Origin: Haliotis rufescens
Lineage: Eukaryota
DNA length: 64,000 nucleotides
Assembly: GCF_023055435.1 (NCBI RefSeq)
Contig: NW_025963780.1
Span: 10,416,001 to 10,480,000, forward strand
Direction: 5' to 3'
A model generated the notes under the pieces. That model had not been told where the DNA came from. It worked only from the letters and a program-made list of their open reading frames with translations, and searched no databases. Numbering within the stretch: position 1 is the first letter of the stretch; every line of letters starts with the position of its first letter. Both the position numbers and the translations under genes were made by a program. Positions 3,101-64,000 of the stretch are shown here, in pieces.

Positions 3101-3309
3101 ATCATCCATGTAGTATGGATTAGTCATTAAACATATCATCCAAGTAGTATGGATTAGTCATTAACCAAATCATCCATGAAGTATGGATAAGTCATTAACC
3201 ATATCATCCATGTAAGATGGATTAGTCATAAAACATATCATCCATGTAGGATGGATTAGTCATTAACCACATCATCCATGTAGTATGGATTAGTCATTAA
3301 ACATATCAT
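145..3309. repeat. 34-bp minisatellite, about 93 copies
   Basis: unit GGATTAGTCATTAACCATATCATCCATGTAGGAT. Confidence 0.97.
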
Positions 3310-3310
3310 G

Positions 3311-4704
3311 TCAGACCCACCCATGCCCTAGTCCTACAAGCTGTACAATCTCAGACCACTGACCCTACAATGCCCTCGCCCTACAAGCTGTACCATCTCA
3401 GACCACTGACCCACCCATGTCCTCGTCCTACACGCTGTACCATCTCAGACCACTGAGCCACCCATGCCCTAGTTCTACAAGCTGTACCATCTCAGACCAC
3501 TGACCCTACCATGCCCTCGCCCTACAAGCTGTACCATCTCAGACCACTGACCCTACCATGCCCTCGCCCTACAAGCTGTACCATCTCAGACCACTCACCC
3601 ACCCATGCCCTAGTTCTACAAGCTGTACCATCTCAGACCACTGACCCACCCATGCCCTAGTCCTACAAGCTGTACAATCTCAGACCACTGACCCTACCAT
3701 GCCCTAGTTCTACAAGCTGTACCATCTCAGACCACTGACCCTACCATGCCCTCGCCCTAAAAGCTGTACCATCTCAGACCACTGACCCACCCATGCCCTC
3801 GTCCTACAAGCTGTACCATCTCAGACCACTGACCCTACCATGCCCTCGTCCTACAAGCTGTACCATCTCAGACCACTGACCCTACCATGCCCTCGTCCTA
3901 CAAGCTGTACAATCTCAGACCACTGACCCTACCATGCCTTCGTCCTACAAGCTGTACCATCTCAGACCACTGACCCACCCATGCCCTCGTCCTACAAGCT
4001 GTACCATCTCAGACCACTGACCCACCCATGCCCTCGTCCTACAAGCTGTACCATCTCAGACCACTGACCCTACTATGCCCTCGTCCTACAAGCTGTACCA
4101 TCTCAGACCACTGACTCACCCATGCCCTCGTCCTACAAGCTGTACCATCTCAGACCACTGACCCTACCATGCCCTCGTCCTACAAGCTGTACCATCTCAG
4201 ACCACTGACCCACCCATGCCCTAGTCCTACAAGCTGTACAATCTCAGACCACTGACCCACCCATGCCCTAGTTCTGCAAGCTGTACCATCTCAGACCACT
4301 GACCCTACCATGCCCTCGCCCTACAAGCTGTACCATCTAAGACCACTGACCCACCCATGCCCTCGTCCTACAAGCTGTACCATCTCAGACTACTGACCCA
4401 CCCATGCCCTCGTCCTACAAGCTGTACAATCTCAAACCACTGACCCACCCATGCCTTTGTCCTACAAGCTGTACCATCTCAGACCACTGACCCTACCATG
4501 CCCTCGTCCTACAAGCTGTACCATCTCAGACCACTGACCTACCCATGCCCTAGTTCTACAAGCTGTACCATCTCAGACCACTGACCCACCCATGCCCTCG
4601 TCCTACAAGCTGTACCATCTCAGACCACTGACCCACCCATGCCCTCGTCCTACAAGCTGTACCATCTCAGACCACTGACCCACCCATGCCCTAGTCCTAC
4701 AAGC
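3311..4704. repeat. 47-bp minisatellite, about 30 copies
   Basis: unit TCAGACCACTGACCCTACCATGCCCTCGTCCTACAAGCTGTACCATC. Confidence 0.97.
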
Positions 4705-28700: not shown

Positions 28701-31700
28701 AGATTTTCTCTTGAAGTTGGTAAAATCATGCTTTGTTTGCACATTTTAGTGATTCCTGTGAACTTCAAACATGTGAGAAGTAAAATAACTTGTAAGCGTG
28801 AGAAGGAAACATGGCTAGTAGCGACCACTGGAACATGACAGTTTGACATTCGAGCCTGCTTATCCTACCTCCTCTTGTCTCCCTCGGTGTGGCATGGGAG
28901 GGAACTGACCTTGTCAAACTCTGTCTGTGCGGACCTCCTCATGGTCTCCAGCGGGCCCTGCAGTGACATGATCTCCTCCTCCTGCTCCTTGCACTTGTCC
29001 AGGGACTGCAACATCGTCAGCGTCACACAATCAAGACATGCTGTACTGTACACTCAGTGATAAATGTCATAGAAGTTACTTTTGTCAAATTGTAGTATCT
29101 CAATGATCCTCAATTAGAAACATGACGTTTAAGATTCTTAAGATAATCGATATGAACTATGGAATGATATCCTCTAGGTAATGAATGTGTATTTATATTG
29201 ACATATCATTACAATAGTAACTTGGATAGGGTCACCTTGTATTTGATCTAATGATGTTTGCATGGTTCATCACCGTAAAATCTGTCAATCTGATCGGCGA
29301 ATTACTGTAAAATTATATACAAGATGGCTTGTACTGAGTGAGTTGGTTTTAACACCACTTTGAACAATATTTCAGCAAAATCATAGCATGAATGGAAGGA
29401 GAGCACAAATCAACTCAGATGTTTACCACTTTGCAGTATACACAGCAAATTGTGGTGCCTTGACAATTGTGTCCTATGCTCGGACTATTTGGTACCACGT
29501 GACCTATGTCCACTGCTGGTACTACCCACCTGTATGTACCATCCACCCACCTGTATGTACCCTCCACCTACCTGTATGTACCATCCACCCACCTGTATGT
29601 ACCCTCCATCTACCTGTATGTACCCTCAACCCACCTGTATGTACCCTCCAACCACCTGTATGTACCTTCCAACCACCTGTATGTACCCTCCACCTACCTG
29701 TATGTACCCTCCATCTACCTGTATGTACCCTCCAACCACCTGTATGTACCCTCCACCTACCTGTAAGCACCCTCCACCCACCTGTATGTACCCTCGCCCC
29801 ACCTGTATGTACCCTCCATCTACCTGGATGTACCCTCAACCAACCTGGATGTACCCTCACTACACCTGTATGTACCCTCCACCTACCTGTAAGTACCCTC
29901 CAACCACCTGTATGTACCTTCCAACCACCTGTATGTACCCTCCACCTACCTGTATGTACCCTCCATCTACCTGTATGTACCCTCAACCAACTTGGATGTA
30001 CCCTCACTACACCTGTATGTACCCTCCACCTACCTGTATGTACCCTCCACCTACCTGTATGTACCTTCCACCTACCTGTATGTACCTTCCACTCACCTGT
30101 ATGTACCCTCACCCCCCCTGTATGTACCCTCCACCCACCTGTATGTACCCTCCACCTACCTGGATGTACCCTCCACCCACCTGTAAGTACCCTCCACCCA
30201 CCTGTAAGTACCCTCCACTCACCTGTATGTACCATCCACCGACCTGTATGTACCCTCCACTCACCTGTATGTACCATCCACCGACCTGTATGTACCCTCA
30301 CCACACCTGGATATACCCTCACCCAACCTGTATGTACCCTCACCCAACCCGTATGTACCCTCCACCCACCTGTAAGTACCCTCCACCCTCCTGGATGTAC
30401 CCTCCACCTACCTGTATGTACCCTCCATCTACCTGTATGTACCTGTATGTACCCTCCATCTACCTGTATGTACCTGTATGTACCCTCCATCTACCTGTAT
30501 GTACCCTCCACCCACTTGTATGTACCCTCCACCCTCCTGGATGTACCCTCCACCCACCTGTATGTACCCTCCATCTACCTGTATGTACCTGTATGTACCC
30601 TCCATCTACCTGTAAGTACCCTCCACCCACTTGTATGTACCCTCCACCCACCTGTATGTATCCTCCACCCACCTGTATGTATCCTCCACCCACCTGTATG
30701 TACCCTCCATCTACCTGTATGTACCCTCCATCTACCGGTATGTACCCTCCATCTACCTGTAAGTACCCTCCACCCACTTGTATGTACCCTCCACCCACCT
30801 GTATGTATCCTCCACCCACCTGTATGTATCCTCCACCCACCTGTATGTATCCTCCACCCACCTGTATGTACCCTCCACCCACCTGTATGTACCCTCCACC
30901 CACCTGTATGTATCCTCCACCCACCTGTATGTATCCTCCACCCACCTGTATGTACCCTCCACCCACCTGTATGTACCCTCCACCCACCTGTATGTATCCT
31001 CCACCCACCTGTATGTACCCTCCACCCACTTGTATGTACCCTCCACCCACCTGTATGTACCCTCCACCCACCTGTATGTATCCTCCACCCACCTGTATGT
31101 ACCCTCCACCCACTTGTATGTACCCTCCACCCACCTGTATGTATCCTCCACCCACCTGTATGTATCCTCCACCCACCTGTATGTACCCTCCACCCACTTG
31201 TATGTACCCTCCACCCACCTGTATGTACCCTCCACCCACCTGTATGTATCCTCCACCCACCTGTATGTATCCTCCACCCACCTGTATGTATCCTCCACCC
31301 ACCTGTATGTATCCTCCACCCACTTGTATGTATCCTCCACCCACCTGTATGTACCCTCCACCCACCTGTATGTATCCTCCACCCACCTGTATGTATCCTC
31401 CACCCACCTGTATGTACCCTCCACTCACCTGTATGTACCATCCACCGACCTGTATGTACCCTCCACCCACCTGTATGTATCCTCCACCCACCTGTATGTA
31501 TCCTCCACCCACCTGTATGTACCCTCCACCCACCTGTATGTACCCTCCACCCACCTGTATGTATCCTCCACCCACCTGTAAGTACCCTCCACCCACCTGT
31601 ATGTATCCTCCACCCACCTGTATGTATCCTCCACCCACCTGTATGTATCCTCCACCCACCTGTATGTATCCTCCACCCACCTGTATGTATTCCTCCTTGT

Positions 31701-34700
31701 GCTGTTCCACCTGCTCCACCAACTCACGGATGGTCTCCATAGACAACTTGTGTTGTGGTGTGAGGTCCGACACTTCACGCTTGTACTCTGCGATGCTGCC
31801 AAACGCCTCGTCTATCTTCCCCAGGGCCTTCTCATACTTTACAATATTCACCTGAAACACACAACTACTATGTTCAAGACAACACCTCATGAACGACCAC
31901 ATGAACAACTGAAAAGTCCACAGCACAATAGGCAGCCTCAAAGGGAATGACATCATTACTCTGGTCCTTGGTATTCTTTGTTCACTGGGAAGCATATTCA
32001 CCACCCACAAGTTTTTGGCATGACATTACAATTTCAGCGTTCCTTTGGGTACCCACCCGCTCTCGTTTGACGACATAAGCTGCAACAACCTTGAAGAGAT
32101 GAACAAACTCCATGAAGGTGAGCGGCGTGTAGAACCTGAGTGGCTCCCTCTGGTGACAGAAGTGTCTTTCCACCGCTGACTTGGCCGAGAGGTGGATGTA
32201 GGCCATGGCATTACTTGCCATTGTAATTTGCTCCTCGCGTCGAGCTGGGTTCCATGGAATGACGATCTGAGAGAAAATATGTTGTATTGTAACCAAACTT
32301 TTACACAGCCACCTTAATGATTTTCTGAAACTTCAGCTTATTTTGCAATGTATTAATGGGTTCACTTCCTAAATTCATCGAGGTTTTCAGGGAGTGAAAA
32401 TCTAAAAAATGATTATTTTTATTTTAACATAACTCCTACCATCAGTTACAATAAAAAGATAATTCCTAACATGCCTAGGAAAGAAGACACGGTTGGATGA
32501 CCACATAGAACAAAAAGCACAGAGATCATTTACATCTCAGTTACACCATTTCTAAATAACAAATCTTTATTTTCAGCGAAACAATAGCTTCAATTTCCAA
32601 AGACCTCCATACAGAGCCTATGTCTTGATGCTGCTTGGAGTCACAAAGTAAATGACTACCACAAGGTCAATGATGTCTACACCAAAGGTCAATGGTTACC
32701 ACAAGGTCAAGGACTATTCATTGACCACCACAAGGTCAAGGATGACCACAATGTCAAAGACTACCACAAAGTTAATGACTACCCTAAGGTCAAAGAATAT
32801 TCAATGACTACCTACCACAAGGTCAGTGACTAGCATAAGGTCAAAGACTATCTTATGGTCAAGGACCACCACAAGGTCAAGGACTATCACAAGGTCAATG
32901 AGTACTGGTCACAAGTTACCTTTGATTTCTCGTCCTCCAGCCACGACCAGGCGACGGTTGTGAAGGCTTGGTAGGACCAGGGGAGGAACAGGTCGATACT
33001 GACACAGTGCTTCAGGAGCCCCGGGTACCTGTTCACTTTCTCATGCAGGGAGTGGAAGTCAGTGGAGTAGCTGTTCCCTAGAGGCGCATGGAGAATCATG
33101 TTGAGTGAGTGAGTGAGGTTTAACGCCGCTTTTAGCAATATTCCAGCAATATCACAGCGGGGGACACCAGAAATGGCCTTCACACATTGTACCCATCGAA
33201 CCCGGGTCTTCCCACCGCCCCTAGAATCATGTTGAAGTTAATGCTGTATGAGACTGGTTTACGATGGATGTCATGTTTGGAAAATGGATGGTTTGTTTTT
33301 ACACCACAGTGAGGAATTTTCAGGCATTATCACTGATAATATTGACAGAAATATGTGCTCAAAACGTCATATTCAGCATTTGATTGGAGTAAAGTTAAGA
33401 GTTTGTTTTGAATGTTTAATGCTGCATTCAGCAATATTCCAGCTATATGACAACAGACAATCCAGTGATTGATTATATGAGCAAAGATCCATGGGGTTGA
33501 GGTACGTTGATCTGCTGTCAACCAAATCACCAATCCATTTAGTCTCTAAATAGGACAAGCATAGCCGTTTGGGAATCAATACATAACATGAAATATGTGA
33601 TAAGTCTGACCCAGCAATTTACAAAATACAGCCACAAGGCTTTGCAGTTCACTTGAATTATGAAGAAATAATGGCGGCCATGTCAAAATTTAGATTTGAC
33701 TTTTTAGTTAAATGCTTAGAGACACCACAACTGGGATCTTTCTTACAAAGTTTCAAAGAACTTTCAGTTTCCGTTGTTTCAGAGCTGATGTCAAAACATG
33801 ACAGTGACACCAGAAAATGGGGTTAGGTGAAGGTCAGGGGAAAACATATGGCTGCCTTGTTTGGAGTCGGATCAGAATTCTGTGAGCACTTTTTAGAGAT
33901 ATCATTTGTACACAGTTTCAGCTACGTAGGCCTTGTAGTTTCAGCGGAGTCATCAACAATGTATAAAGTTCACTTGATTTTCAGTCAGGTGAGAGAGAAA
34001 GTGGTATTGACCACAAAATTGATTGCCAAATTTAGTCCATTCTTCAGTGAAGCTATACAGAGCGCCTTATCTCACCCTTGTAGTTGAGACAGACAATGAT
34101 GTGTAGATTCTGTTTGATCCTCTTGATGTAGCGATCAAACGCCTGCTCAATCTTATCGACCCTCTTGGTCTGTACACCCCCCGGCATCATCTGGCTGACT
34201 ATCTTCTGAACCTCAGCATCTGAGTACAGTCCCGGAGATGTTCCTGGCACACACAACACTTCGGTTAGTCTGATATAGTAAATAGAACATCAGATAATCA
34301 AGCATAATTACCCTACACATCATGCTGGATAACAAGCTAACATCAAATATCGCCATTCAACTATGATAAATATTCAAGACCCATACCTTCATTAGAAAAG
34401 TGACATCAGTCTCTTACATAATATACGCCTGTAATTTAATTGGACAGCAATTTTTAGGGTTACATGTCATTTTTAACAGGCTCAAATTGAAACATTCCTA
34501 ATGAACAGGTCTTCGGTATTCGTCATAGGACACTCAAGGATGAGTGACAATGCAATGTTCAGAAAGAGACAGGAACTCCTGCTGACACCGTGGCCCACCT
34601 TCTGCCATGAGGGTGCTGATGTCCTGGAGACAGGCGGTGCCCAGATCCTCGTGGATCAGCAGCACTGCAGGTTTCCCCACCACCCCGGCGTGCTGGCAGG

Positions 34701-37700
34701 AGCGCTTGATGTGCTCCCTCACGATGGTCAGGTTGTACCCCCGGTCTGTCTGGGGCTTCGGCTCGTACACCTGGGAAGTCACATGATGATGTTCAACACA
34801 TGTCTTACTGCATTATCTTTGCCAAACCATCTCGTACTACTGCTGGAATGTGTTATAACCTGATTGAATATATGAAAATTTGAACTGTTTGATAAAAAAG
34901 TTTTTGGTCAACAAAACCAGGACAATTACTGGTCCGAAAAGAAATTCAGGAGACAACAAACTTTGCTATTTAATCAGAAACACTTTCATAATTCAACTAA
35001 TTTGCCATCGTTTTGCCATTTGTTCAGGTAAAGAAAATCAGGAGATTGACATTGCATATTTCTTCACAGTAGATGTGTGGTGTTGGGGTGAACAATCAAC
35101 CGGGTTCAAGTCTTGGTCAGAGTACCATGGAGTGTAAGCAGCCACTTGATGACATGGCCTTGTGTCTGGTACGTCAAACTCATACTCAATACAGAACTGT
35201 CTCCACCTGTTGTCTCTAATAATAAACATAACAAGGTAAAAGGAATCCAACATACAATACATCAGTGCCTGTTTAATCATCCTTACCTTGCAGTGTGCAA
35301 TGTAGGCAGCCAGTCTGGCCAGTGTGGCTCTCCCAGTACAGTAGCTCATGCCTAGCAGTAGGCCGTGGCCGCCAGGGTGCGCCTGAAAGTACATTAACAT
35401 GGATTCATAAAAGAACCATAATGTGAGTAATGGAATTTTATGTTAGGTCTCACTATGAAATATTACAACAAATACTTGGCCTCTATTCTGAATGAAAGGA
35501 GACATCGGCATGAAGTTGTGACACTCTCTGTATGACATCAACCCCATGGAGAGTCACAGTGGACCCTATCACCCCATTCTTTCTGACAGCTGTCATCCTA
35601 ATCAATGGCATGGATTGTTCATGCTACTAATCACTGACTTGCCTGATGACCTACACAGGTCACCATGATATAGCTGCAATATTATACTATATATCTGTAG
35701 GGTAATGAATGTTCTCACCAGTATCCGGCTGAGTCTGGCAGCATGGTTGATGGCCTCAGTGAAGAACACCACCTCGAGTCTCTGCCAAGTTCCTGTGTTG
35801 TACTCCGCCAGACAGGTGGCCAGGGCCTCTCTCAGACCCTCTTCTGTACTCTCCATATACCCTGCACATATACAGCAACAGCGTTCATTGAGCATGGGAC
35901 ATTGGCTTGTACACATCAACAGCTTTCATGGAGCATGGGACATGCGCTTGTACACAGCAACAGCTTTCATGGAGCATGGGACATTGGCTTGTACACATCA
36001 ACAGCTTTCATGGAGCATGGGACATGCTCTTGTACACAGCAACAGCTTTCATGGAGCATGGGACATGCGCTTGTACACATCAACAGCTTTCATGGAGCAT
36101 GGGACATGCACTTGTACACAGCAACAGCTTTCATGGAGCATGGGACATTGGCTTGTACACAGCAACAGCTTTCATGGAGCATGGGACATACACTTGTACA
36201 CAGCAACAGCTTTCATGGAGCATGGGACATACACTTGTACACATCAACAGCTTTCATGGAGCATGGGACATGCTCTTGTACACAGCAACAGCTTTCATGG
36301 AGCATGGGACATGCGCTTGTACACATCAACAGCTTTCATGGAGCATGGGACATTGGCTTGTACACATCAACAGCTTTCATGGAGCATGGGACATGCGCTT
36401 GTACACAGCAACAGCTTTCATGGAGCATGGGACATGCGCTTGTACACAGCAACAGATTTCATGGAGCATGGGACATGCTCTTGTACACAGCAACAGCTTT
36501 CATGGAGCATGGGACATGCTCTTGTACACAGCAACAGCTTTCATGGAGCATGGGACATGCGCTTGTACACATCAACAGCTTTCATGGAGCATGGGACATG
36601 CGCTTGTACACAGCAACAGCTTTCATGGAGCATGGGACATGCGCTTGTACACATCAACAGCTTTCATGGAGCATGGGACATGCTCTTGTACACAGCAACA
36701 GCTTTCATGGAGCATGGGACATGCGCTTGTACACATCAACAGCTTTCATGGAGCATGGGACATGCACTTGTACACAGCAACAGCTTTCATGGAGCATGGG
36801 ACATGCACTTGTTTCAGACACAGGGGAACTATAGGCTTGCATAAATTACACAAACTGTTTCAGACACAGGGGAACTATAGGCTTGTACAAATCAGACAAA
36901 CTGTTTCAGATACAGGGGAACTATAGGCTTGTACAAATCAGACAAACTGTTTCAGACACAGGGGAACTATAGGCTTGTACAAATCAGACAAACTGTTTCA
37001 GACACAGGGGAACTATAGGCATGTACAAATCAGACAAAATGTTTCAGACACAGGGGAACTATAGGCTTGTACAAATCAGACAAACTGTTTCAGACACAGG
37101 GGAACTATAGGCTTGCACATATCAAGTTTTGACCAAAACTAAAACAATATCTGTCTACAGAATATGACAGCTGACAGAAAGGCTGATTACACTGAGCTGA
37201 ATATGTAACCTATTTGAGTTAAACAACGATGTGCCAATAACTATGAAACATTTTTTGTTTGCTATTTTGATTGAAGTAAAACATAATAGATCAAGTCCTG
37301 TACCTTTCTCCACAGGCTGGCCCTGAGCTTCTGTGTGACACGACATGAAGAACTTGCTGAAGATGAAATCGGTGACGTTGCTGCAGCCGCCCTTAATCTG
37401 AAACATGTCACATGAAACAATACTAATAGAATTTCTACTTATTTACATTACTCTCAAAGATTGTCAGGTTCTTTTTGCTATTACATCAGTAGAAGAATAA
37501 ATCGGCTCTGATAATTTAGGCCATGGCTTTAAGATGGTGTGGTCATTAATAGGAATTAATTCTGGTTCGACCGTGCCTTAGAATTTGTCGTTAAAGAGTG
37601 ACTGACTGCTGTATTAACATACACATCATTTTCGCAGTCAAACCAAAGTGGGTTTTGAAAGTCTTGACTGCCCATTCCCCAAGTCTAGCCCTATTCACAA

Positions 37701-49700: not shown

Positions 49701-52700
49701 GCAGTGACCCAGGTGCCCCCACAACATCCATGGCCTTGTTCTTCAGCTGCACGATGTGGTCCACCATCATGTCCTGGAAGATGGCAGACGTCATCCCACG
49801 CGACATCATGGCCGTCGTTGACGTCTGCTTCGGCAGAACCAGGTGCTGCAAAAATTATTAATACTTGTGATTCGCAAGAAGATCCACAAAAGTGTAGAAA
49901 CCCTTATGTATCGGCATATATAATAATTGCTACATCAGTGCACTGTTAAACTCGTCTGCCAGTCATTGTATGGTTTCTTCATTCAGTCTTCCCAACAATA
50001 GGGTCCACAATGAGAAACAAACACAGGTTTCAACATTTATATGGCAAATCTAATCTGCAAACCAAGTAATCAGAAAAAGAGGTCTTAATTTCCACCAACA
50101 ACGAGTCCAAAATGAGCTGTAGAGTAGTCATCTCACACTCACTGAGCCTGTCCAACACAGGAGACAGGTGCAGACAATCTGTGTAACTGACTTCACTCCA
50201 TACCTTGATGAGTGCTGTCTTGCCCACTCCGGCAGCACCAGTCAGCAGGACGGGGAGGTGGGCCGACACGAACAGCTCCAGGAGGTAGTTGTAGCGATCC
50301 ACCTAACACAGACAGCTTTATGACACTCACAACTATGATCAGAGGCAAGGAATTACATATTAGAAGTATTAACTATTGACATTTTGTAATCAATGTATTC
50401 CGCAATTGTGCCATCGGGCACATCAGATTCACTTAGTGTGCATATATGTAAGTGCACATCAGATTTACCTAGTGTGCATATGTAAGTGCACATCAGATTT
50501 ACCTAGTGTGCATATGTGAGTGCACGTCAGATTTACCTAGTGTGCATATGTAAGTGCACATCAGATTCACTTAGTGTGCATATGTAAGTGCACATCAGAT
50601 TTACCTAGTGTGCATATGTAAGTGCACGTCAGATTTACCTAGTGTGCATATGTAAGTGCACATGAATGTCCACATCAGATTCACTTAGTGTGCATATATG
50701 TAAGTGCACATCAGATTTACCTAGTGTGCATATGTAAGTGCACATCAGATTTACCTAGTGTGCATATGTAAGTGCACATCAGATTTACCTAGTGTGCATA
50801 TGTAAGTGCACATCAGATTCACTTAGTGTGCATATGTATGTGCACATCAGATTCACTTAGTGTGGATATATGTAAGTGCACATCAGATTCACTCAATACA
50901 ACCAGTGCAGATTATGAGTTTCATTAATCATTGACACATGACTAGACACATTACAGCAAGTTTTCAACAGCCGTTACAAATACAGTTGAGTTACATTCCT
51001 TGATACAAGCAGGATGTGCTATGGACCAAAGTGTCCAGACCTCCGTCTGCACCAAGTTGCAATGTCTTCAACAAATAAAGCAGTGGAGGGTTCACTGTAA
51101 TATTCAACCATAGACAGATTATTACTGTCCAGCCTTGTGAGGCTTTACTACCATTTGTTTGTCTTATCTGAGGTAAATAAAAACACTATCACATGTCCCA
51201 CTGTTGACAAAGTACAAATATTTCTTCAGAGGTACTGACCTCTGGTGTGAAGACGAACCCTCCCAGGCTCCGAACCTTCTCCTGCTGTCTCTGCCCCCAG
51301 CGTGTAAAGGTCCCACTTGTCTCGTCCAGACAGTAGTCAAACACCTGACCCCACACAGGCAATCGGATTGGGTGGGAAGCTCGGTAAAGCACATCATGGG
51401 CAAACTTGCTGAATCGTTCTCGGAATCTAAACAGGACAAGAGAGGGAACATAACCTCCTTAGTATTCCCTTTAATGCACCTGACTACAACACATGTATTC
51501 AATGCCCATGATTCAGACAGAAAGAGCTACTAGACCTACCTATCATGCAGAGATCCCCCAAAAGACCAGATGTAGGCAAAGGCGAACATGCCCTTGACGA
51601 TGGTGGTGTAGCCAGGGATGAGGACCTCGATGTGGGAGCTGGTGGTCATCCGACTTGCCATCTGCCGGGATGGAGCGCCACCTAGTGAGCTCTTGCTGCC
51701 GCCCTGTTGCTCTGCATATACGCACCCAAAATGTATAATACTGAACAGGTACAAGAGTCTGTCACGGTGTAGCACTGTAACAATCTCTGATTAATGACCA
51801 ACAATTTAGGTCTGCCAATTGGAAGAGAATAATTATGACCATATTTGGAATATGATGTGAGTAGAACATGTACATAATAGGTGTCATAAGAATATTGTTT
51901 CTAAACGGTACCCGGCTATATTACAGTGTAGATTTAAGACAGAGACTATTGGAAGTCAATGTCTAGGTATGGAAGTTGTGATAGTACTAGAGCTCTGGTG
52001 CCGTTGTACAAAGCAATCTTTGCGCAAAAGGGATCGTAACTCTCTTACCTTCACATAGACTTACGACATATGTAGCGCTAAGATTGTTTTGTACAACAAC
52101 ACCCATATCACTGAGGGAGTGAGCTTGAAGAGTGAGACCTAGCAGTGATGCCGCACATACCATCCTCTTCCTTTAGTTCTGCCTGGACGCGGCGGTCCAG
52201 CTCTTCTCGGAGGAACATCTTGTCAAACAGCGCTTTCAGCATGTTGAGGAACATGGTGACTTCCTGGACACCGGGCACCACCTGATTGGCTCGCACCTTC
52301 TCCACCCCGACGTCAGTAAGCAGGGCAGGACAGCACTCACTGGCCAGGAACTTCACAGTGGGTGGGAACACATCCTTCACAAGGTCATCAAGGATTTTCA
52401 TGCTGTAGAGAAGAAGCAATAATTTGTAACATGACAGCTAAATAAACATTTACAGAACAGGGTCTATTCATTAAACGTGAGAAAAATGTGTACAAATCAA
52501 ATAAATTGTTTATACTGGCTGAGTCACTATCTTGATATTTTTGTTTATTGATTCAAGAGCATGGAGCCAAAAGCCACTTTCAGAAAATATATTGTCGGAT
52601 CATATGTTTTGTGACTTCATACATTTTCGAATGGCCATGTTTATCGTGAGTACTCCCACTATAACGAGGGGGGAGGAACACAGGCATTGTAAATACTCAC

Positions 52701-58700: not shown

Positions 58701-61700
58701 GCAAAACTAAACATCTAGGCTATATGTTAGGGAGGCAGTACTAGTTTAATATAGGATATATATCATACACTATGTTAATGATAGGTCATTCATTTTCTCT
58801 TGAAACAATGACAATAAACTGTACTGGTAAAATCAAGTTCCCCAAATGCCCTGTCAATCTGTGTTTAATGTTAGGGCCTGGTCATTCTTTATAAGGGCTG
58901 GATGGGTGAGGAACATAGATGAGGGCAAAACACACAGGCCCCTTAAAACATGGACAATGGTTCTGATAGAAGACTGTACCCAAATCCTAAACATACCATG
59001 CTAAAGTCTCCTTTGAACTGCATGTATGACACTGGACACTGACTCTAGCTTGGAAGCATAACAAACTCTTGCATTTGTATGACACCTTGTGCTTGAACTT
59101 GATATAAAATATTCTAAATATAAGAAAAGAAATATGAAAATAGGCCAAGTGTATGGATGACTCCACTGACATGTAACAACCTTTTGCTGGAGGGAAGTGC
59201 AGACCTATCAACAAGTCATGATATATACCGTATTCCACATAATAAGCACCCAGGGTGCTCTCCAAATTAGAAATAAGGGGCTCTTATTAGAACATTATTT
59301 TGGTGAAAAAAAAACAGAGTTGAAAGATCGTAAATTTTGGGGTTTATGCTGACAGCCTGAAATGTTTATATGAGACAGATATATTTTTCCAGAATTTAAT
59401 TGCCCATAAATAAGGGTGCATATAACACACAAGTGCATATTATACATGAATAAATAAGTCCTGTGTACATGGATCAATTGGAAGGGTGCTAATTGGGATT
59501 GTTTACTGGCTAATATATTAGCAAATATCGCTGTGGGCGCTTATTAGAGCAGGGCGCTTATTACGTTGAATACGGAATGTATTTAAGGGAGTGCAATCTT
59601 ATGTCAATCAGACCAAACGCTTTGTCTTATTTATCTCTTTTCTTCTGTATTTGTTTCTTTCTATTCTCATGATGATCATTCCTTATTCTCTTGTCTTCCA
59701 ACGTCATCTTTTGTACATATGTAAATAATATATGGAAATACCAAGGAGAGGGTGTCCTAAGTCCGATAATTTGCTCCTAATCCTTTTCAATTTGTGAATG
59801 AAATATATTTTAACTAAACTACAACCTGGTATAACAGACTGACATACAAAAACACTTGACACTACAGACAATATCCACATCAGCCTCTACTGCATGCTAG
59901 CCTACAATGTTGACAACACAACATACTGATACTGATATTGAGACAACAAACATGAGGGGAATAACCAGAGGAACTTTCATCAATCACAGCTTGGAAAAGT
60001 GTACTTCTTAAAGCACCGTTTCTCATCACTCAAGGACACCACAACATGTTATTGAGAAACGTATTCCTACAAACACTAAAGAGGTGAATATCGATCTCAT
60101 CTGTTACAAATGTAAATGTGTCGTTGAAGGATTCCAGAACAAAGTAACCATGGTAACTGTATATCCTGTAAATGGTTTAGTCAGTTTACAGATTTACAGT
60201 GCACTTGAAATTTATGACAAACAACATGGTATTTTTCTTGAAATGCTGACCCCAAATCACTATTGTGTTTCTGGCGTCCCCCTGGGCCACTGTGCCTTCC
60301 TCACACATCAGGAATTTCCCTCCATAATGTTGTGTTGTGTGCACTGATTTTGCTTGAGTCGGCCATCTTGTAGACATTCCAGAATATTCTTTTTTCAATT
60401 TATAAAGTTTGAATCGCGAAATTTGTCAGATTATTTTCCAAAGCGTAGTCTGGAATGGCAGACACCAATTTGAAATTAGTGTCGTAGAGCTCCAGAAATC
60501 TGCTTTCTGATTGGCTACTATTGACAAAAGGTCATTCTGATGTGATGGGATGACCTCAGATCTTTGTGCAGTGGGAGCAAGAACTAAATAGATCACTCTG
60601 GTATACAGGGAAAAGTCAAAAATAAATATTAAAAAAGTGTTTGTTTCTGTTGTTGAAAAAGTTATGAGACCACATTGCCATGAGTGTTGTGTTTGTCAAG
60701 ACGGTCTTGTAGGACTTGTAATTTACTGTATTGCACGCACAATATTATGGGGTCAAAACGTGAATTGTCATTCAGCAGCACAAAACAACATAGCTTTTCA
60801 CATATTTCTTTTCACTTTTCATTGTTTAAGTTTGGTGGATCTGTAAACCCACTTAATGTTTATCCTTAAGTCGATGTTGAAGTCATTGAGGCTAGACAGT
60901 TTTGTGGAACAGCTATGAAGGACTGAGTCTACCATGGCTGTGTGTGGATATTAATCTACCGGTCTATATACTAGATAGTAGGACACTACCTAATACGCAA
61001 TCTGGGGTTATATTACAACCACCATAACAGTTCAAGCAGTGACCACAACAAATACTTACTTCCTCTTCCAGTTCATCGACCTCCTCACCATCCTAGATAG
61101 AGAGTTAGTTGTAGTAGGTAAGCAGTGTCATACTTCAGGTACCACACACAGACCTCACACAACCTTTCATCATTTCCAAAATCATTCAGGTTCAGAACTG
61201 ATCTTCTACAATCCAGGCTGGCCATAAGATGCTACTAACAGGATTGGGTGGTCAGACTCGGTTGATGCATGTTATTGCATCCCAATTGCATAGGTCGATG
61301 CTGATGATGTCAACCCATTATTTACAGCCCACTGTCATATAGCTGCTATATTGCTGAGTGCGGCGTTAAATAACAAACATATAATCTATTACATACCATG
61401 ACATCCCTCTGTTCCCATGACATTTTACCCTTATGGCATAGATGGTTGTTCATACTATCAACCACTGGTTTGCCACTAATATATTATCTGCAGACTGCCA
61501 TTGCTGAACATTCACTCTGTCACCCTGCTCCTGACAAGACTTTACCTGCAGCTTCTGGGTCTTGTACTGGAAGACGAGATCTCTGTCAGTGGTGAGCTCA
61601 TCCTTGGAGTGGTCAGGGGCAAACAGCTTGTAGTTGAGGAAGTTGATGGCCCGGGCCAGCATGGTGGAACATGTGGACTTTCCGCTTCCAGCCTGTCCAG

Positions 61701-61749
61701 TGAGAATCACAGGTTGCTTCAGCTCCAGGGCTGTGTGGAGCTGCAGGAT
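7201..61749 (-). CDS. DNHD1: Divergent axonemal dynein heavy chain (DNHD1-like), partial multi-exon gene: 49 exons, AAA2 to C-terminal domain; start and stop not seen in window
   Basis: Exons splice in frame with matching phases. Motifs: AAA2 GQAGSGKS and WLVMDGDLDAVWAD; AAA3 GAAGVGKT, FFVDDLN, QPPLEVLRQ; AAA4 region HAARLSRIL..GHGLLLG; stalk YTPLTFMEFV; MTBD LSKNDIDELKSYREPP; AAA5 WPLLVDPDNQA; AAA6 GYWLLLQNYHL and HPQFRLWIT. Dynein heavy chain family is secure; DNHD1 orthology is inferred from divergence (about 0.5). Confidence 0.9.
7775..7880. repeat. (GAGT)n/(CAGT)n microsatellite
   Basis: direct reading. Confidence 0.95.
8700..8740. repeat. (TGT)n microsatellite
   Basis: direct reading. 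Confidence 0.9.
8767..8942 (-). CDS. Dynein HC exon
   Basis: AEKETANG...ARTFSLSHAAEQHLLAGKS; phase 0-2. Confidence 0.8.
10014..10304 (-). CDS. Dynein HC exon (AAA6 lid)
   Basis: PLALMHSLLLQHSYYG...WNLMDL...LIGRVYSDHCTDMCD. Confidence 0.9.
10532..11139. mobile_element. TA-flanked MITE (Tc1/mariner/pogo-like)
   Basis: Ends TACTGTAAATCTGGAAATTAATGCA / TGCGTTAATTACAAGATTTACAGTA form an imperfect 25-bp inverted repeat. Confidence 0.7.
11248..11372 (-). CDS. Dynein HC exon
   Basis: VLIQHGLRVTCEAKANFRSCLQKSY. Confidence 0.88.
11438..11605. other. Assembly gap (168 N) within an intron
   Basis: N run; flanking exon phases match, so no exon needs to lie in it. Confidence 0.99.
11924..12104 (-). CDS. 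Dynein HC exon (AAA6)
   Basis: IHPQFRLWITT...VIP. Confidence 0.92.
12319..16476. repeat. 39-bp minisatellite, about 107 copies
   Basis: unit GGCCCAGAAGTCACTATGGGGAGACAAGCATGGATACTA. Confidence 0.98.
16520..16734 (-). CDS. Dynein HC exon (AAA6)
   Basis: AIEDCLQSGYWLLLQNYHLA (dynein G.WvlLqNcHL motif). Confidence 0.93.
17189..19349. repeat. 20-bp minisatellite, about 108 copies
   Basis: unit (G/A)GGGTACAT(GT/TA)CTGTGTACT. Confidence 0.98.
19434..19599 (-). CDS. Dynein HC exon (AAA6)
   Basis: IAELSRAVVTYELG...TNQFTPTVFLLP. Confidence 0.9.
19968..20066 (-). CDS. Dynein HC exon
   Basis: ...ELSLFQKCLLWKFCCPHR (dynein lt.fqkLll.r.lRPDR motif). Confidence 0.88.
20964..21065 (-). CDS. Dynein HC exon
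   Basis: SWVDCNVLESLHHPFHGLCHSLLDNPSQWEEYFT|gtaagt. Confidence 0.88.
21239..21483 (-). CDS. Dynein HC exon
   Basis: RALELSN...MMFEQHYNLL...QKPSWIADK. Confidence 0.9.
21888..22200 (-). CDS. Dynein HC exon
   Basis: GPLLEDKTMLDSL...YIPMMRQSTMIYNTL...YYIPFYKFVDIF. Confidence 0.92.
22441..22625 (-). CDS. Dynein HC exon
   Basis: CCINMAVSDEAIINRLL...ERKEYE. Confidence 0.9.
23030..23205. repeat. 21/24-bp short tandem repeat
   Basis: AACACAATGGAACAATGGCCAGTG variants. Confidence 0.9.
23544..23729 (-). CDS. Dynein HC exon (AAA5)
   Basis: LDPLFRGLL...VRVGDMIFNYHPNFCLYLST. Confidence 0.94.
24087..24274 (-). CDS. Dynein HC exon (AAA5)
   Basis: ...NLWIIEADDPHLNSRLINAIVH; phase 2-1. Confidence 0.88.
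24489..24654 (-). CDS. Dynein HC exon (insert)
   Basis: MPIEAAFESAAD...ARTQN; phase 1-2. Confidence 0.78.
25053..25848 (-). CDS. Dynein HC exon (AAA5 with Ser/Asp-rich insert)
   Basis: GDALITAACVCYHGP...WRMTNLPTDLHSVQNALL...WPLLVDPDNQAEMWVK. Confidence 0.94.
26081..26203 (-). CDS. Dynein HC exon (stalk CC2)
   Basis: AQARLGHLRVEANRIK...IEKHIM|gtgagc. Confidence 0.88.
26606..26876 (-). CDS. Dynein HC exon (MTBD/CC2)
   Basis: WEEGKLLLIRDNFLQELIFYDKD...VSKAGESICLWVHAV. Confidence 0.94.
27424..27687 (+). mobile_element. SINE-like retroposon (family B) with 13-bp TSD
   Basis: ACCAAAGCTACTC at 27411-27423 and 27688-27700; tail GCTGGAATATTGCTGAGTGTGGTGTTAAAC(AACC)n; related copies at about 61200-61380 (+), about 33410-33530 (-) and about 42760-43440 (-, interrupted). 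Confidence 0.8.
27703..27848 (-). CDS. Dynein HC exon (microtubule-binding domain)
   Basis: VNPSYQAAQAALCALSKNDIDELKSYREPPDVIKFVINALCLLF. Confidence 0.94.
28173..28280. mobile_element. About 108-bp fold-back MITE
   Basis: GGGATCCGTTCCACAAAGC ... GCCTTGTGAAACGGGACCC; related copy at 51996-52105. Confidence 0.65.
28910..29005 (-). CDS. Dynein HC exon (stalk CC1)
   Basis: SLDKCKEQEEEI...AQTEFDK|gtcagt. Confidence 0.88.
29525..31690 (-). repeat. 21-bp minisatellite (about 100 copies) built from the exon 31681 donor junction
   Basis: gene-strand unit GTACATACAG|GTGGGTGGAGG. Confidence 0.97.
31681..31851 (-). CDS. Dynein HC exon (stalk CC1)
   Basis: VNIVKYEKALGKIDEA...HKEEYIQ|gtgggt. Confidence 0.9.
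32057..32266 (-). CDS. Dynein HC exon
   Basis: MAYIHLSA...RFYTPLTFMEFVHLF. Confidence 0.92.
32650..32900. repeat. Degenerate about 18-bp repeat
   Basis: GACTACCACAAGGTCAA variants. Confidence 0.8.
32920..33077 (-). CDS. Dynein HC exon
   Basis: RYPGLLKHCVSIDLFLPWSYQAFTTVA. Confidence 0.92.
33105..33222 (-). mobile_element. tRNA-derived SINE (internally deleted) with (ACTC)n tail and 13-bp TSD
   Basis: AGAATCATGTTGA at 33092-33104 and 33223-33235; B-box-like GGTTCGAT; 3' tail shared with family B. Confidence 0.8.
34076..34243 (-). CDS. Dynein HC exon (AAA4)
   Basis: TSPGLYSDAE...YIKRIKQNLHIIVCLN. Confidence 0.93.
34599..34770 (-). CDS. Dynein HC exon (AAA4)
   Basis: VYEPKPQTDRGYN...AGVVGKPAVLLIHED...LQDISTLMAE. 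Confidence 0.92.
35287..35382 (-). CDS. Dynein HC exon (degenerate AAA4 P-loop)
   Basis: AHPGGHGLLLGMSYCTGRATLARLAAYIAHCK. Confidence 0.92.
35719..35861 (-). CDS. Dynein HC exon (start of AAA4)
   Basis: CLAEYNTGTWQRLEVVFFTEAINHAARLSRIL. Confidence 0.93.
35870..36810. repeat. 41-bp minisatellite, about 23 copies
   Basis: unit TACACAGCAACAGCTTTCATGGAGCATGGGACATGCGCTTG. Confidence 0.97.
36809..37115. repeat. 46-bp minisatellite, about 7 copies
   Basis: unit CTGTTTCAGACACAGGGGAACTATAGGCTTGTACAAATCAGACAAA. Confidence 0.95.
37304..37397 (-). CDS. Dynein HC exon
   Basis: IKGGCSNVTDFIFSKF...VEK; phase 0-1. Confidence 0.82.
37708..37853 (-). CDS. Dynein HC exon
   Basis: SVTGGRTPSLRRQ...ALMSLEE|gtgagt; phase 1-0. 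Confidence 0.8.
38118..38225 (-). CDS. Dynein HC exon (insert)
   Basis: LGRISPDHEHPDG...GRSSV|gtaggt; 108 nt, phase 1-1. Confidence 0.7.
38971..38997 (-). CDS. Dynein HC candidate 27-nt micro-exon
   Basis: cacacag|(A)QDRQQQPP|gtgagt; phase 1-1. Confidence 0.55.
39725..39817 (-). CDS. Dynein HC exon (insert)
   Basis: VGELVSKGKVPGLRL...SSFTS|gtacgt; 93 nt, phase 1-1. Confidence 0.7.
39950..41150 (+). mobile_element. Decayed DIRS1-type tyrosine-recombinase retrotransposon fragment
   Basis: IDLFATSQN...YAFTPP...ILVAPWWPARSWF (DIRS methyltransferase-like domain); APFEPL...LTKKMVFLLALAT..VSKLNAL and EIRAVASTMA...FWRSNTIFISHY (tyrosine recombinase); frameshifted and deleted. Confidence 0.85.
41349..41495 (-). 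CDS. Dynein HC exon (acidic insert)
   Basis: EVTETETAGEVDH...STYGTPS|gtcagt; phase 1-1. Confidence 0.75.
41880..42225 (-). CDS. Dynein HC exon (low-complexity insert)
   Basis: actccag|GRSTPTKRG...THTDG|gtaaga; phase 0-1; S/T/D rich. Confidence 0.78.
42212..42605 (-). repeat. 49-bp minisatellite (about 8 copies) built from the exon 42225 acceptor junction
   Basis: gene-strand unit AGTAGTAGTAATAGTGGTAGTATTCACCACTCCAG|GGGCGATCTACTCC. Confidence 0.95.
42823..43361. mobile_element. Non-autonomous TIR DNA transposon nested in a SINE-like remnant
   Basis: CAGGCTTCAAAGTT / AACTTTGAGGCCTG inverted ends; ATAAC on both flanks. Confidence 0.7.
43518..43633 (-). CDS. Dynein HC exon
   Basis: QLWFSRTLEEAVVKHF...QSQF|gtgagt. 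Confidence 0.85.
43836..44036 (-). CDS. Dynein HC exon
   Basis: ...QLWCHECCRTFSDRLISSE (dynein LW.HE..RvF.DRL motif); acceptor position less certain. Confidence 0.88.
44296..45577. repeat. 43-bp minisatellite, about 30 copies
   Basis: unit ACACACTATGTTCTCTGTTTCATGGTTAACATCCTACATTGTT. Confidence 0.97.
45595..45781 (-). CDS. Dynein HC exon (AAA3 lid)
   Basis: LRPTPAHAHYVFSLHDISRVVQGI (dynein PTP.k.HY.Fnlrd motif). Confidence 0.92.
46016..46188 (-). CDS. Dynein HC exon
   Basis: LGHACHVMSSRLTRLFINL...EFGQ; an alternative in-frame acceptor 6 nt upstream (46194) is possible. Confidence 0.88.
47770..47901 (-). CDS. Dynein HC exon
   Basis: YQPPLEVLRQILTTGGVYDR; phase 1-1. Confidence 0.93.
48253..49659 (-). 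repeat. 61-bp minisatellite (about 23 copies) built from the exon 49635 donor junction
   Basis: gene-strand unit TCAACATGGCACAGAGGATAGGCT|GTAGGTTCATTGTGTTGTCACAATATTGTAG|CCCTTC. Confidence 0.97.
49635..49845 (-). CDS. Dynein HC exon (AAA3 Walker B)
   Basis: HLVLPK...LFFVDDLNMAQRIG T|gtaggt; phase 0-1. Confidence 0.88.
50204..50302 (-). CDS. Dynein HC exon (AAA3 Walker A)
   Basis: VDRYNYLLELFVSAHLPVLLTGAAGVGKTALIK. Confidence 0.95.
50419..50893. repeat. 34-bp minisatellite, about 14 copies
   Basis: unit GTGCACATCAGATTTACCTAGTGTGCATATGTAA. Confidence 0.95.
51240..51426 (-). CDS. Dynein HC exon
   Basis: FRERFSKF...GQVFDYCLDETSGTFTRW...FTPE; phase 2-0. Confidence 0.92.
51540..51711 (-). CDS. 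Dynein HC exon
   Basis: ...FAFAYIWSFGGSLHD (dynein lid motif); phase 1-2. Confidence 0.92.
51996..52105. mobile_element. Fold-back MITE, probably related to 28173-28280
   Basis: GTTGTACAAAGCAATCTT ... AAGATTGTTTTGTACAAC. Confidence 0.55.
52161..52402 (-). CDS. Dynein HC exon
   Basis: MKILDDLVKDVFPPT...ELKEED; phase 2-1. Confidence 0.88.
53316..53481 (-). CDS. Dynein HC exon
   Basis: FIFESPSLVEASPGAIARC (matches the dynein FE..dL..ASPATvSRC motif); phase 1-2. Confidence 0.92.
53828..54979. repeat. 77-bp minisatellite, about 15 copies
   Basis: unit CAACCCGTCTTGGGCAGGCAAACCAGTTGTTGATACAAGCAAGGATGAACACCATCAGGGTACAATGTCATCCAACC. Confidence 0.97.
55086..55362 (-). CDS. Dynein HC exon (AAA2 Walker B)
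   Basis: MFGHFENGLWHGG...WLVMDGDLDAVWADGLKTLLDEEHKLSVANGEQVKL; AG/GT borders. Confidence 0.93.
55680..56002. repeat. 81-87-bp tandem repeat, about 4 copies
   Basis: GCCTAGTTTCTCATTTAACACAACTGGCTGCTGGTTGTAC... repeated. Confidence 0.93.
56257..56469 (-). CDS. Dynein HC exon (AAA2 insert)
   Basis: cttacag|FLQNIDED...LLPTVMPPSE|gtgaga; 213 nt. Confidence 0.85.
56591..58317. repeat. 28-bp minisatellite, about 62 copies
   Basis: unit GTGTCTGACAGTCACATGTCCCATACCA. Confidence 0.98.
59228..59575. mobile_element. MITE with CCGTATT termini
   Basis: CCGTATTCCACATAATAAGCACCC / GGGCGCTTATTACGTTGAATACGG. Confidence 0.7.
61060..61092 (-). CDS. Dynein HC 33-nt acidic micro-exon
   Basis: ctatctag|DGEEVDELEEE|gtaagt; phase 0-0. 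Confidence 0.7.
61200..61380 (+). mobile_element. Diverged copy of SINE-like family B
   Basis: Similar to 27424-27687 (GGGTGGTCAG, CCCAATTGC, ATATTGCTGAGTGCGGCGTTAAA). Confidence 0.7.
61546..61749 (-). CDS. Dynein HC exon 1 in window (AAA2 Walker A)
   Basis: ctcctcag|ILQLHTALELKQPVILTGQAGSGKST...KLQ|gtaaag; 204 nt, phase 0-0. Confidence 0.9.
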
Positions 61750-64000
61750 CTGAGGAGTAGGACAGATCTCATGAACAGGGGAATGTATTCAACTCCAGGG
61801 CTGTGTGGAGGGGCAGGATCTGGGGAGTCGGACAGATCTCATGAACAGGGGAATGTATTCAGCTCCAGGGCTGTGTTGAGCTGCATGATCTGGGGAGTAG
61901 GACAGATCTCATGAACAGGATGTATATTCAGCTCCAGGGCTGTGTGGAGCTGCATGATCTGGGGAGTCGGACAGATCTCATGAACAGGGGAATGTATTCA
62001 GCTTCAGGGCTGTGTGGAGCTGCAGGATCTGGGGAGTAGGACAGATCTCATGAACAGGGGAATGTATTCAGCTCCAGGGCTGTGTGGAGGGGCAGGATCT
62101 GGGGAGTCGGACAGATCTCATGAACAGGGGGATGCATTCAGCTCCAGGGCTGTGTGGAGCTGCAGGATCTGGGGAGTAGGACAGATCTCATGAACAGGGG
62201 AATGTATTCAGCTACAGGGCTGTGGGGAGCTGCAGGATCTGGGGAGTAAGACAGATCTCATGAACAGGGGAATGTATTTAGCTCCAGGGCTGTGTGGAGG
62301 AGCAGGATCTGGGGAGTAGGACTGATCTCATGAACAGGGTGTATATTCAGCTCCAGGGCAGTGGGGAGCTGCAGGATCTGGGGAGTAGGACAGATCTCAT
62401 GAACAGGGTGTATATTCAGCTCCAGGGCTGTGTGGAGCTGCAGGATCTGGGGAGTAGGACAGATCTCATGAACAGGGGAATGTATTCAGCTCCAGGGCTG
62501 TGTGGAGCTGCAGGATCTGGGGAGTCGGACAGATCTCATGAACAGGGGAATGTATTCAGCTTCAGGGCTGTGTGGAGCTACACCATCTGGGGAGTAGGAC
62601 AGATCTTATGAACAGGGGGATGCATTCAGCTCCAGGGCTGTGTGGAGGGGCAGGATCTGGGGAGTAGGACAGATCTCATGAACAGGGGAATGTATTCAGC
62701 TCCAGGGCTGTGTGGAGCTGCACGATCTGGAGAGTAGGACAGATCTCATGAACAGGGGGATGCATTCAGCTCCAGGGCTGTGTGGAGGGGCAGGATCTGG
62801 GGAGTCGGACAGATCTCATGAACAGGGGGATGCATTCAGCTACAGGGCTGTGTGGAGCTGCAGGATCTGGGGAGTAGGACAGATCTCATGAACAGGGGAA
62901 TGTATTCAGCTACAGGGCTGTGGGGAGCTGCAGGATCTGGGGAGTAAGACAGATCTCATGAACAGGGGAATGTATTTAGCTCCAGGGCTGTGTGGAGGAG
63001 CAGGATCTGGGGAGTAGGACTGATCTCATGAACAGGGTGTATATTCAGCTCCAGGGCAGTGGGGAGCTGCAGGATCTGGGGAGTAGGACAGATCTCATGA
63101 ACAGGGTGTATATTCAGCTCCAGGGCTGTGTGGAGCTGCAGGATCTGGAGTGTAGGACAGATCTCATGAACAGGGGAATGTATTCAGCTCCAGGGCTGTG
63201 TGGAGCTGCAGGATCTGGGGAGTCGGACAGATCTCATGAACAGGGGAATGTATTCAGCTTCAGGGCTGTGTGGAGCTGCACTATCTGGGGAGTAGGACAG
63301 ATCTTATGAACAGGGGGATGCATTCAGCTCCAGGGCTGTGTGGAGGGGCAGGATCTGGGGAGTAGGACAGATCTCATGAACAGGGGAATGTATTCAGCTC
63401 CAGGGCTGTGTGGAGCTGCACGATCTGGAGAGTAGAACAGATCTCATGAACAGGGGGATGCATTCAGCTCCAGGGCTGTGTGGAGCTGCAGGATCTGGGG
63501 AGTAGGACAGATCTCATGAACAGGGGAATGTATTCAGCTCCAGGGCTGTGTTGAGCTGCATGATCTGGGGAGTAGGACAGATCTCATGAACAGGATGTAT
63601 ATTCAGCTCCAGGGCTGTGTGGAGCTGCATGATCTGGGGAGTCGGACAGATCTCATGAACAGGGGAATGTATTCAGCTTCAGGGCTGTGTGGAGCTGCAG
63701 GATCTGGGGAGTAGGACAGATCTCATGAACAGGGGAATGTATTCAGCTTCAGGGCTGTGTGGAGGGGCAGGATCTGGGGAGTAGGACAGATCTCATGAAC
63801 AGGGGGATGCATTCAGCTCCAGGGCTGTGTGGAGCTGCAGGATCTGGGGAGTAGGACAGATCTCATGAACAGGGGAATGTATTCAGCTACATGGCTGTGG
63901 GGAGCTGCAGGATCTGGGGAGTAAGACAGATCTCATGAACAGGGGAATGTATTTAGCTCCAGGGCTGTGTGGAGGAGCAGGATCTGGGGAGTAGGACTGA
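61718..64000 (-). repeat. 69-70-bp minisatellite (32 or more copies, runs off the window) built from the exon 61749 acceptor junction
   Basis: gene-strand unit TACATTCCCCTGTTCATGAGATCTGTCCTACTCCCCAG|ATCCTGCAGCTCCACACAGCCCTGGAGCTGAA. Confidence 0.97.

Follow-up and report, generated by a model that had tools for sequence, protein, structure and literature searches.

Junction-spanning minisatellites in introns of a DNHD1-like dynein heavy chain gene of red abalone: probable local duplications of the mirage type

The window analysed here is a 64,000-nucleotide stretch of red abalone (Haliotis rufescens) DNA (assembly GCF_023055435.1, contig NW_025963780.1, positions 10,416,001 to 10,480,000 of the forward strand), in which an initial annotation had described four tandem arrays that amplify exon-intron boundaries of a dynein gene. 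Window coordinates are positions in this stretch, and flanking pieces L002-L021 extend the region to -39999..224000 (264 kb in total), with positions in these pieces given as L-coordinates (for example, L002:1454 is window coordinate 65454). The minus strand of the window carries a DNHD1-like gene, as a stop-free minus-strand stretch used as query matched DNHD1-like dynein proteins. A second search recovered mollusc orthologues, among them XP_048242736.1 (P0156 hereafter), 'dynein heavy chain domain-containing protein 1-like [Haliotis rufescens]', of 5471 amino acids. Residues 1-5358 of P0156 map to the minus strand in exact blocks with 100% identity, which makes it the annotated protein of the locus. 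Using the window together with 200 kb of flanks, we derived 94 exons with canonical splice sites, spanning 153883 down to 7198. They were checked against P0156 exon by exon with a local script, the check at junctions being that of the split codon.

Arrays were called with Tandem Repeats Finder (TRF), and their overlaps were measured against the junctions from the P0156 mapping. Four arrays of minisatellite-sized head-to-tail repeats in the window, with periods of 21, 49, 61 and 70 bp, 8-103 copies and 88-96% matches, extend across a splice junction. These arrays, the exons they enter and the junctions they span are as follows (a slash marks the junction).

29524..31689, minus strand: 21-bp array in intron 74, about 103 copies; the gene-strand unit GTGGGTGGAGGGTACATACAG is intron start plus exon tail.
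31681..31851, minus strand: exon 75, 171 nucleotides, ending ...HKEEYIQ; its last 15-16 nucleotides and the donor form the first copy of the 21-bp unit.
31681 (last exon base), minus strand: donor junction ATACAG/gtgggt, protein EEYIQ/SLDKCK; 9 exon nucleotides inside the array (15-16 with one indel).
48252..49659, minus strand: 61-bp array in intron 55, 23 copies; the unit is 25 nucleotides of exon tail plus the donor GCT/GTAGGT.
49635..49845, minus strand: exon 56, 211 nucleotides, ...FFVDDLNMAQRIG; it ends in a split codon at 49635.
49635 (last exon base), minus strand: donor junction TAGGCT/gtaggt, protein RIG/SYQPP; 25 exon nucleotides inside the array.
42212..42605, minus strand: 49-bp array at the 3' end of intron 60, 8 copies; the unit is the acceptor plus 14 nucleotides of exon head.
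41880..42225, minus strand: exon 62, 346 nucleotides, GRSTPTKRGPH..., in a low-complexity insert region.
42225 (first exon base), minus strand: acceptor junction ccag/GGGCGA, protein TQSQF/GRSTP; 14 exon nucleotides inside the array.
61718..64000 and on to 65454 (L002:1454), minus strand: 70-bp array in intron 45, 54 copies in total (61718-63997 when TRF is run on the window alone); the unit is 38 nucleotides of intron tail plus 32 nucleotides of exon head.
61546..61749, minus strand: exon 46 (corrected numbering), 204 nucleotides, ILQLHTALELKQPVILTGQAGSGKST..., the P-loop of an AAA module.
61749 (first exon base), minus strand: acceptor junction ctcag/ATCCTG, protein ELITK/ILQLH; 32 exon nucleotides inside the array.

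Each of the four units thus holds 9-32 nucleotides of exon sequence together with a splice site, the terminal copy is the annotated GT-AG junction, and the array runs into the intron only. The initial annotation had read the units as straddling two real donors (31681 and 49635) and two real acceptors (42225 and 61749), with the terminal copy serving as the functional junction, and TRF together with exact protein mapping bears this out: all four match annotated sites. The residues at the edge of exon 75 are conserved across molluscs, and the protein interrupted at 49635 resumes (RIG/SYQPPLEV) in the next exon, at 47901. The exon upstream of intron 45 ends ...ELITK at L002:1466 with the donor AAG/GTGAGC. 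The junction at 42225 rests on the red abalone's own annotation through the exact P0156 mapping, distant orthologues giving no match there; exons 62-63 (41326-42225) encode a low-complexity, acidic, serine-rich insert to which distant DNHD1 orthologues do not align and which is covered only by Haliotis proteins.

Repetition of the unit leaves many decoy splice sites in the pre-mRNA. Intron 74 holds 80 copies of CAG/GTGGGT within one mismatch, 49 of them exact, at a spacing of 21 nucleotides, and intron 55 holds 22 near-identical donors at a spacing of 61 nucleotides, including 21 exact 9-mers GCT/GTAGGT. On the acceptor side, six sites within two mismatches recur every 49 nucleotides in intron 60, and 47 recur at unit spacing in intron 45, with 30 of these inside the window. 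The claim of well over 150 extra splice-site copies is therefore roughly right, since the window holds 138 near-identical decoys (80 + 22 + 6 + 30) and about 160 if every copy is counted.

Extending the analysis to the whole gene revealed seven further junction-spanning arrays outside the window, five on the donor side and two on the acceptor side.

L010:2943-4128: donor-side array of intron 3, 182-bp unit.
L006:9263 to L007:5065 (window coordinates 113263-119065): donor-side array of intron 23, 69-bp unit, 85 copies.
L006:1173-2028: donor-side array of intron 25, 85-bp unit.
L004:6924-8279 (window coordinates 90924-92279): donor-side array of intron 31, 28-bp unit.
L003:7569-8154: donor-side array of intron 34, 83-bp unit.
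L005:3113-8968: acceptor-side array of intron 28, 44-bp unit, 131 copies.
L004:8368 to L005:2120: acceptor-side array of intron 30, 72-bp unit, 52 copies.

With these, 11 of the 44 arrays of the gene span a junction, the 44 arrays occupying 33 of its 93 introns, and near-identical decoy sites number about 434 gene-wide. The splice-junction pattern is real, and it is stronger than first noted once the whole gene is counted. It is set in a region rich in such repeats: arrays of at least 150 bp, whose units are all different and measure 17-431 bp, occupy 100,653 of the 264,000 bases (38%) and 50% of the intronic sequence in the DNHD1-like gene.

Eleven non-straddling arrays formed the comparison set within the window, four of which are listed here.

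44279..45575, minus strand: 43-bp array in intron 58, beginning 19 nucleotides past the donor.
35872..36812, minus strand: 41-bp array in intron 67, stopping 10 nucleotides short of the acceptor.
12320..16475, minus strand: 39-bp array in intron 89, 107 copies, 44 nucleotides from the donor.
17192..19349, minus strand: 20-bp array in intron 88, 108 copies, 84 nucleotides from the donor.

Outside the window, intron 32 (2399 nucleotides; L004:4123-6521, window coordinates 88123-90521) carries a 22-bp array of 106 copies that leaves 38 nucleotides at the donor and 21 nucleotides at the acceptor. For the last 113 residues of P0156 (5359-5471), no exon was found in the 47 kb that follow the end of exon 95 at 7198, and a search with the C-terminal half of the Elysia protein as query also failed. 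Two arrays, 144-3309 and 3314-4704, must then belong to a last intron of great length or fall outside the part of the gene that was mapped. A run of 168 N (11438-11605) falls in intron 90, flanked by an exon that ends at 11924 and one that starts at 11372, and the plus strand of intron 62 (40391-41222) has several long open frames of 95-134 amino acids running opposite to the gene, which may be a mobile-element remnant.

The direction of copying can be read from the exon parts of the units. The residues that they encode, such as EYIQ, DDLNM...G, GRSTP, ILQLH, DWMRVV and DSRIS, are conserved not only in abalone but also in bivalves, a nemertean and a crinoid, indicating that the arrays were copied from exon edges and that copying did not run the other way. 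Within the 1.33-Gb genome, the 61-bp and 70-bp units are confined to this locus. The 21-bp unit has look-alike arrays of 67-81% identity on at least 10 other contigs (C112:75.49 Mb, C223:62.58 Mb, C135:13.44 Mb, C346:3.12 Mb, C1:0.30 Mb and others), a likeness that may have arisen by chance, given how numerous short-unit arrays are.

The initial annotation had proposed, as one of two readings, that tandem duplication is biased to exon edges. We compared the number of spanning arrays with a seeding model in which a seed of length u is placed randomly among the positions touching an intron of non-array length R, so that the probability of spanning a junction is about 2(u-1)/(R+2u-1). Summed over the 44 arrays with each seeded in its own intron, the model predicted 9.7 spanning arrays against the 11 observed (P = 0.36). 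A stricter version, in which the unit must hold at least 9 nucleotides of exon and at least 6 nucleotides of intron, predicted 7.4 (P = 0.09), as did seeding over the whole collapsed gene (7.4 expected, P = 0.10). In the window alone, the four spanning arrays compare with an expectation of 4.08, and outside it seven compare with 5.62. Introns free of arrays have a median length of 430 nucleotides, while array-bearing introns have one of 466 nucleotides after subtraction of the array (Mann-Whitney p = 0.91), indicating that the latter are ordinary introns to which an array has been added. With introns this short and unit lengths between 20 and 180 bp, the proportion of arrays expected to span a junction is roughly one fifth to one quarter, which matches what is observed. 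The non-spanning arrays are uniformly placed within introns (Kolmogorov-Smirnov (KS) p = 0.34; folded p = 0.60), and the exonic share of the spanning units ranges from 0.23 to 0.82 (mean 0.42) with no preferred breakpoint. Since the observed count lies near the expected one, placement is uniform and the exonic share is spread, no edge bias is needed to account for the arrays, and the proposed bias is not borne out by these data.

The second reading had been that such duplications are tolerated because the exon-proximal site is selected. The annotated protein takes the proximal site at all 11 spanned junctions, and when DNHD1 proteins from four species (H. rufescens, H. cracherodii, H. rubra and H. 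asinina) are aligned, no indel falls at any of them; tolerance through proximal-site choice fits both observations. Protein identity with H. cracherodii is 98.6%. The decoys would accordingly be silent in RNA, as judged from the RefSeq gene model and protein conservation. Use of distal copies would have different consequences among the window arrays. The 21-bp unit is in frame and free of stops, and each unit included by a distal donor would add seven residues (VGGGYIQ repeats). By contrast, the 49-, 61- and 70-bp units all have a length of 1 modulo 3, and use of a distal copy would shift the frame; in the case of the 70-bp unit, open reading frame (ORF) analysis places a stop after 16 codons if a decoy acceptor is used.

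We then asked how well the decoy sites are kept within the arrays. At splice-site positions, copies depart from the consensus of their unit about as often as at other positions (6.8% compared with 4.2%; Wilcoxon p = 0.56), and the core dinucleotide differs in 8.9% (Wilcoxon p = 1.0). GT or AG is retained in most copies, with a core mismatch of 0-0.7% in most arrays. The largest departure is that of the 69-bp array of intron 23, in which about 43% of copies are off consensus at the core dinucleotide and the consensus itself reads CAG/GCAGGC instead of CAG/GTAGGC, followed by the 6-copy array of intron 3 (33%). The arrays look like neutral, recently homogenised repeats, a pattern that gives no reason to think that decoys are either purged or maintained. 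In intron 31, the 28-bp unit (...CTGTCTCTCATACACACACAG/GTAGGT) has a pyrimidine-rich tract followed by AG/GT that resembles a recursive splice site, repeated about 35-50 times. As for the 61-bp array, we considered whether it might represent micro-exons separated by 31-nucleotide mini-introns and rejected this; nothing observed supports it, and 31 nucleotides is probably too short for a spliceosomal intron.

Intron 45 is the most extreme case. It is 3716 nucleotides long (61750-64000 plus L002:1-1465) and consists entirely of the 70-bp array except for 11-18 nucleotides at the donor. Its layout is 18 nucleotides after the donor (GTGAGCACAGATCCCAAG), 53-54 copies of 32 nucleotides of exon head joined to 38 nucleotides of intron tail, and then the exon. 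Without the array only about 50-56 nucleotides would remain, which is shorter than any array-free intron of the gene (minimum 113 nucleotides). The donor AAG/GTGAGC and the exon tail upstream of it are absent from the 70-bp unit, and the AG of the unit is followed by AT and not by GT. Given that the donor lies outside the unit, intron 45 is not a new intron of the type proposed in the Rogers model of intron gain by tandem duplication.

These results are probably best explained by the arrays being minisatellites of the type called 'mirage' in amphioxus, that is, tandem duplications of local origin in which the unit by chance covers an exon-intron boundary, with no special mechanism needed, and the junction-spanning arrays are most likely a neutral by-product. 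According to this explanation, introns of red abalone would gain locally generated minisatellites at a very high rate. A seed duplication lying wholly in an exon would alter the protein and presumably be purged, and one lying wholly in an intron would be neutral. A seed spanning the junction would keep the exon intact, with the extra copies landing in the intron, and the array could then grow by slippage or unequal exchange. On the donor side, the first donor after the exon would be chosen, on the precedent of the human F7 gene discussed below, while on the acceptor side only the last acceptor would lead into the true exon with its downstream donor, as expected from exon definition. Since the first donor after the exon would be taken and only the last acceptor precedes a real exon, the decoys on both sides would be silent.

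Several points weigh against this explanation. The 11 spanning arrays slightly exceed the 7.4-9.7 expected, and the counts would leave room for a slight preference for edges, of about 1.5-fold at most. The seeding model uses intron lengths after the event and is partly circular, as in intron 45, where the probability of spanning reaches 0.92 only because little but array remains, and the counts come from one gene. In addition, the silence of the decoys is read from RefSeq annotation and protein conservation, and several decoy donors are perfect-consensus AAG/GTGAGT sites (introns 25 and 34), the class that competed with the authentic site in the F7 experiments.

Among the alternatives, tandem duplication could be mechanically biased to exon-intron junctions, for example if transcription or splicing caused breaks or template switching there, with the junctions themselves seeding the arrays. 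The excess of 11 straddlers over the stricter expectation of 7.4 (P about 0.09) and the position of several non-straddling arrays within 10-25 nucleotides of a splice site (introns 5, 15, 20, 58 and 67) would agree with such a bias. However, own-intron seeding gives 9.7 (P = 0.36) and the window matches its expectation almost exactly (4.08 versus 4), non-straddling positions are uniform by both KS tests, and the widely spread exonic share leaves no fixed breakpoint at the junction, and we regard this mechanism as very unlikely. That the arrays or their lengths are assembly artefacts could be suspected because long minisatellites are difficult to assemble and the amphioxus draft genome mis-assembled one mirage (PMC3087553). 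The copies diverge by 3-12% with structured variants instead of being perfectly identical, however, and 44 independent arrays with unrelated units lie in this single gene, with the junction copies in register with protein-confirmed exon sequence. Intronic minisatellites with variable copy number have moreover been cloned and PCR-typed in H. discus hannai, including a 27-bp unit present in up to 62 copies (PMC6905558). An artefact is thus hardly credible and the least probable of the alternatives.

Retention of the repeated splice sites for a function would make them sinks for the U1 or U2 small nuclear ribonucleoproteins (snRNPs), tuners of transcript level through nonsense-mediated decay (NMD), recursive splice sites of long introns, or a source of in-frame protein variants. 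Most copies do keep GT or AG, the in-frame, stop-free 21-bp unit and the early stop behind a 70-bp decoy acceptor would suit protein variants and NMD, respectively, and the 28-bp unit of intron 31, with its pyrimidine tract and CAG/GTAGGT, resembles a recursive site. By contrast, site positions are conserved no better than the remainder of the unit (p = 0.56 and 1.0), and nothing maintains the site in intron 23, where GC has replaced GT in the consensus. High retention elsewhere is expected of young, homogenised arrays anyway. The annotated proteins of four species contain no array-derived residues, the AG of the 21-bp unit is not preceded by a pyrimidine tract and would make a poor recursive site, and the number of straddlers equals the neutral prediction. 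The functional ideas of the initial annotation (snRNP decoys, NMD tuning and recursive splicing) consequently find no positive evidence here, and maintenance for function is very improbable. We give a similarly small chance to the arrays having created or moved some of the introns, above all to intron 45 being a new intron born from duplicated exon sequence. In favour of such a birth, the 70-bp array runs from 11-18 nucleotides past the donor through the acceptor into the exon, the remainder is shorter than any array-free intron, and mirage repeats have been proposed as a route of intron gain (PMC3087553). The two splice sites do not derive from one duplicated AGGT proto-splice site, however, with the donor outside the unit and no GT after the unit AG. 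The small remainder is accounted for just as well by array turnover in which the unique intron sequence alongside is deleted, and introns 32, 25 and 28 point the same way, having 59, 73 and 128 nucleotides outside the array, respectively.

If mirage-type duplication without special mechanism is correct, a splice site can be duplicated tens to a hundred times beside the real one in red abalone apparently without being selected against, and junction-spanning arrays arise as often as geometry predicts. No new mechanism or class of element is revealed, and the interest lies mainly in scale. The abalone genome would offer a rich natural data set on how splicing picks out the authentic site when its copies are identical, a question previously studied in single human genes such as F7. 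For annotation of abalone-like genomes it matters that gene predictors and read mappers can easily misplace junctions in such arrays. It is conceivable, although we hold it only tentatively and think it somewhat unlikely, that this regime is genome-wide, with local minisatellites making up about half of intron DNA, junction-spanning ones persisting at the neutral rate, and thousands of genes carrying tens to hundreds of perfect decoys that the spliceosome ignores. In that event, nature would have put the 'first donor, last acceptor' rules to the test in a massively parallel way, and the genome would hold a standing source of intron sliding or expansion, as intron 45, nearly all array, may illustrate.

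Arrays of this kind have counterparts in other systems. In human genes, the 37-bp variable number tandem repeat (VNTR) of F7 intron 7 (IVS7) and arrays in interferon-inducible 6-16, CBS, LAMIN B2 and PDGF have a first monomer that spans the donor boundary (PMC1557585). Minigene experiments indicated that the pseudo-sites of F7 IVS7 are functional, yet the most upstream site is always chosen unless a pseudo-site matches the consensus perfectly; only the most upstream site is used in F7, LAMIN B2 and PDGF, while 6-16 and CBS also use the two nearest pseudo-sites (PMC1557585). Similarly, the abalone donor arrays at 31681 and 49635 place identical pseudo-donors after the authentic donor (49 exact in intron 74 and 21 exact in intron 55), and some abalone decoys belong to the perfect-consensus class that competed in the F7 minigenes. 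Unlike those of abalone, the human cases are single donor-side arrays with 5-25 pseudo-sites.

In the Rogers model, a new intron arises when an AGGT proto-splice site is duplicated in tandem (Zhuo et al. 2007, as cited in PMC3087553; PMC3265369; PMC4974935). The abalone arrays share with it the conversion of duplicated exon-edge sequence into intron, intron 45 consisting almost wholly of such duplicates. They differ from it in that they seem to lie within ordinary introns of ordinary non-array length, and in intron 45 the donor stands outside the repeated unit.

The closest likeness is to the mirages of amphioxus, named in Adh3 (Cañestro et al. 2002, as cited in PMC3087553) and also present in the globins BflGb6 and BflGb9, troponin C and PGBD5, at both 5' and 3' boundaries and with no aberrant mRNAs (PMC3087553, PMC3902484). 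The initial annotation knew of no description of such an architecture, but junction arrays were already known from these amphioxus genes and from the human genes above; for molluscs, or for eleven such arrays in one gene, we found no description in the literature searched. In both amphioxus and abalone the unit spans an exon-intron boundary, the 5' and 3' sides are both affected, the copy at the edge is the authentic one, and most copies keep AG or GT. The amphioxus units measure 10-160 bp, and regular splicing was reported to be undisturbed, whereas proximal-site use in abalone is read from the RefSeq model and three congeneric proteins. The abalone arrays differ in belonging to a mollusc, in reaching 131 copies per array compared with 3-6 in the amphioxus globins, and in numbering 11 within one gene.

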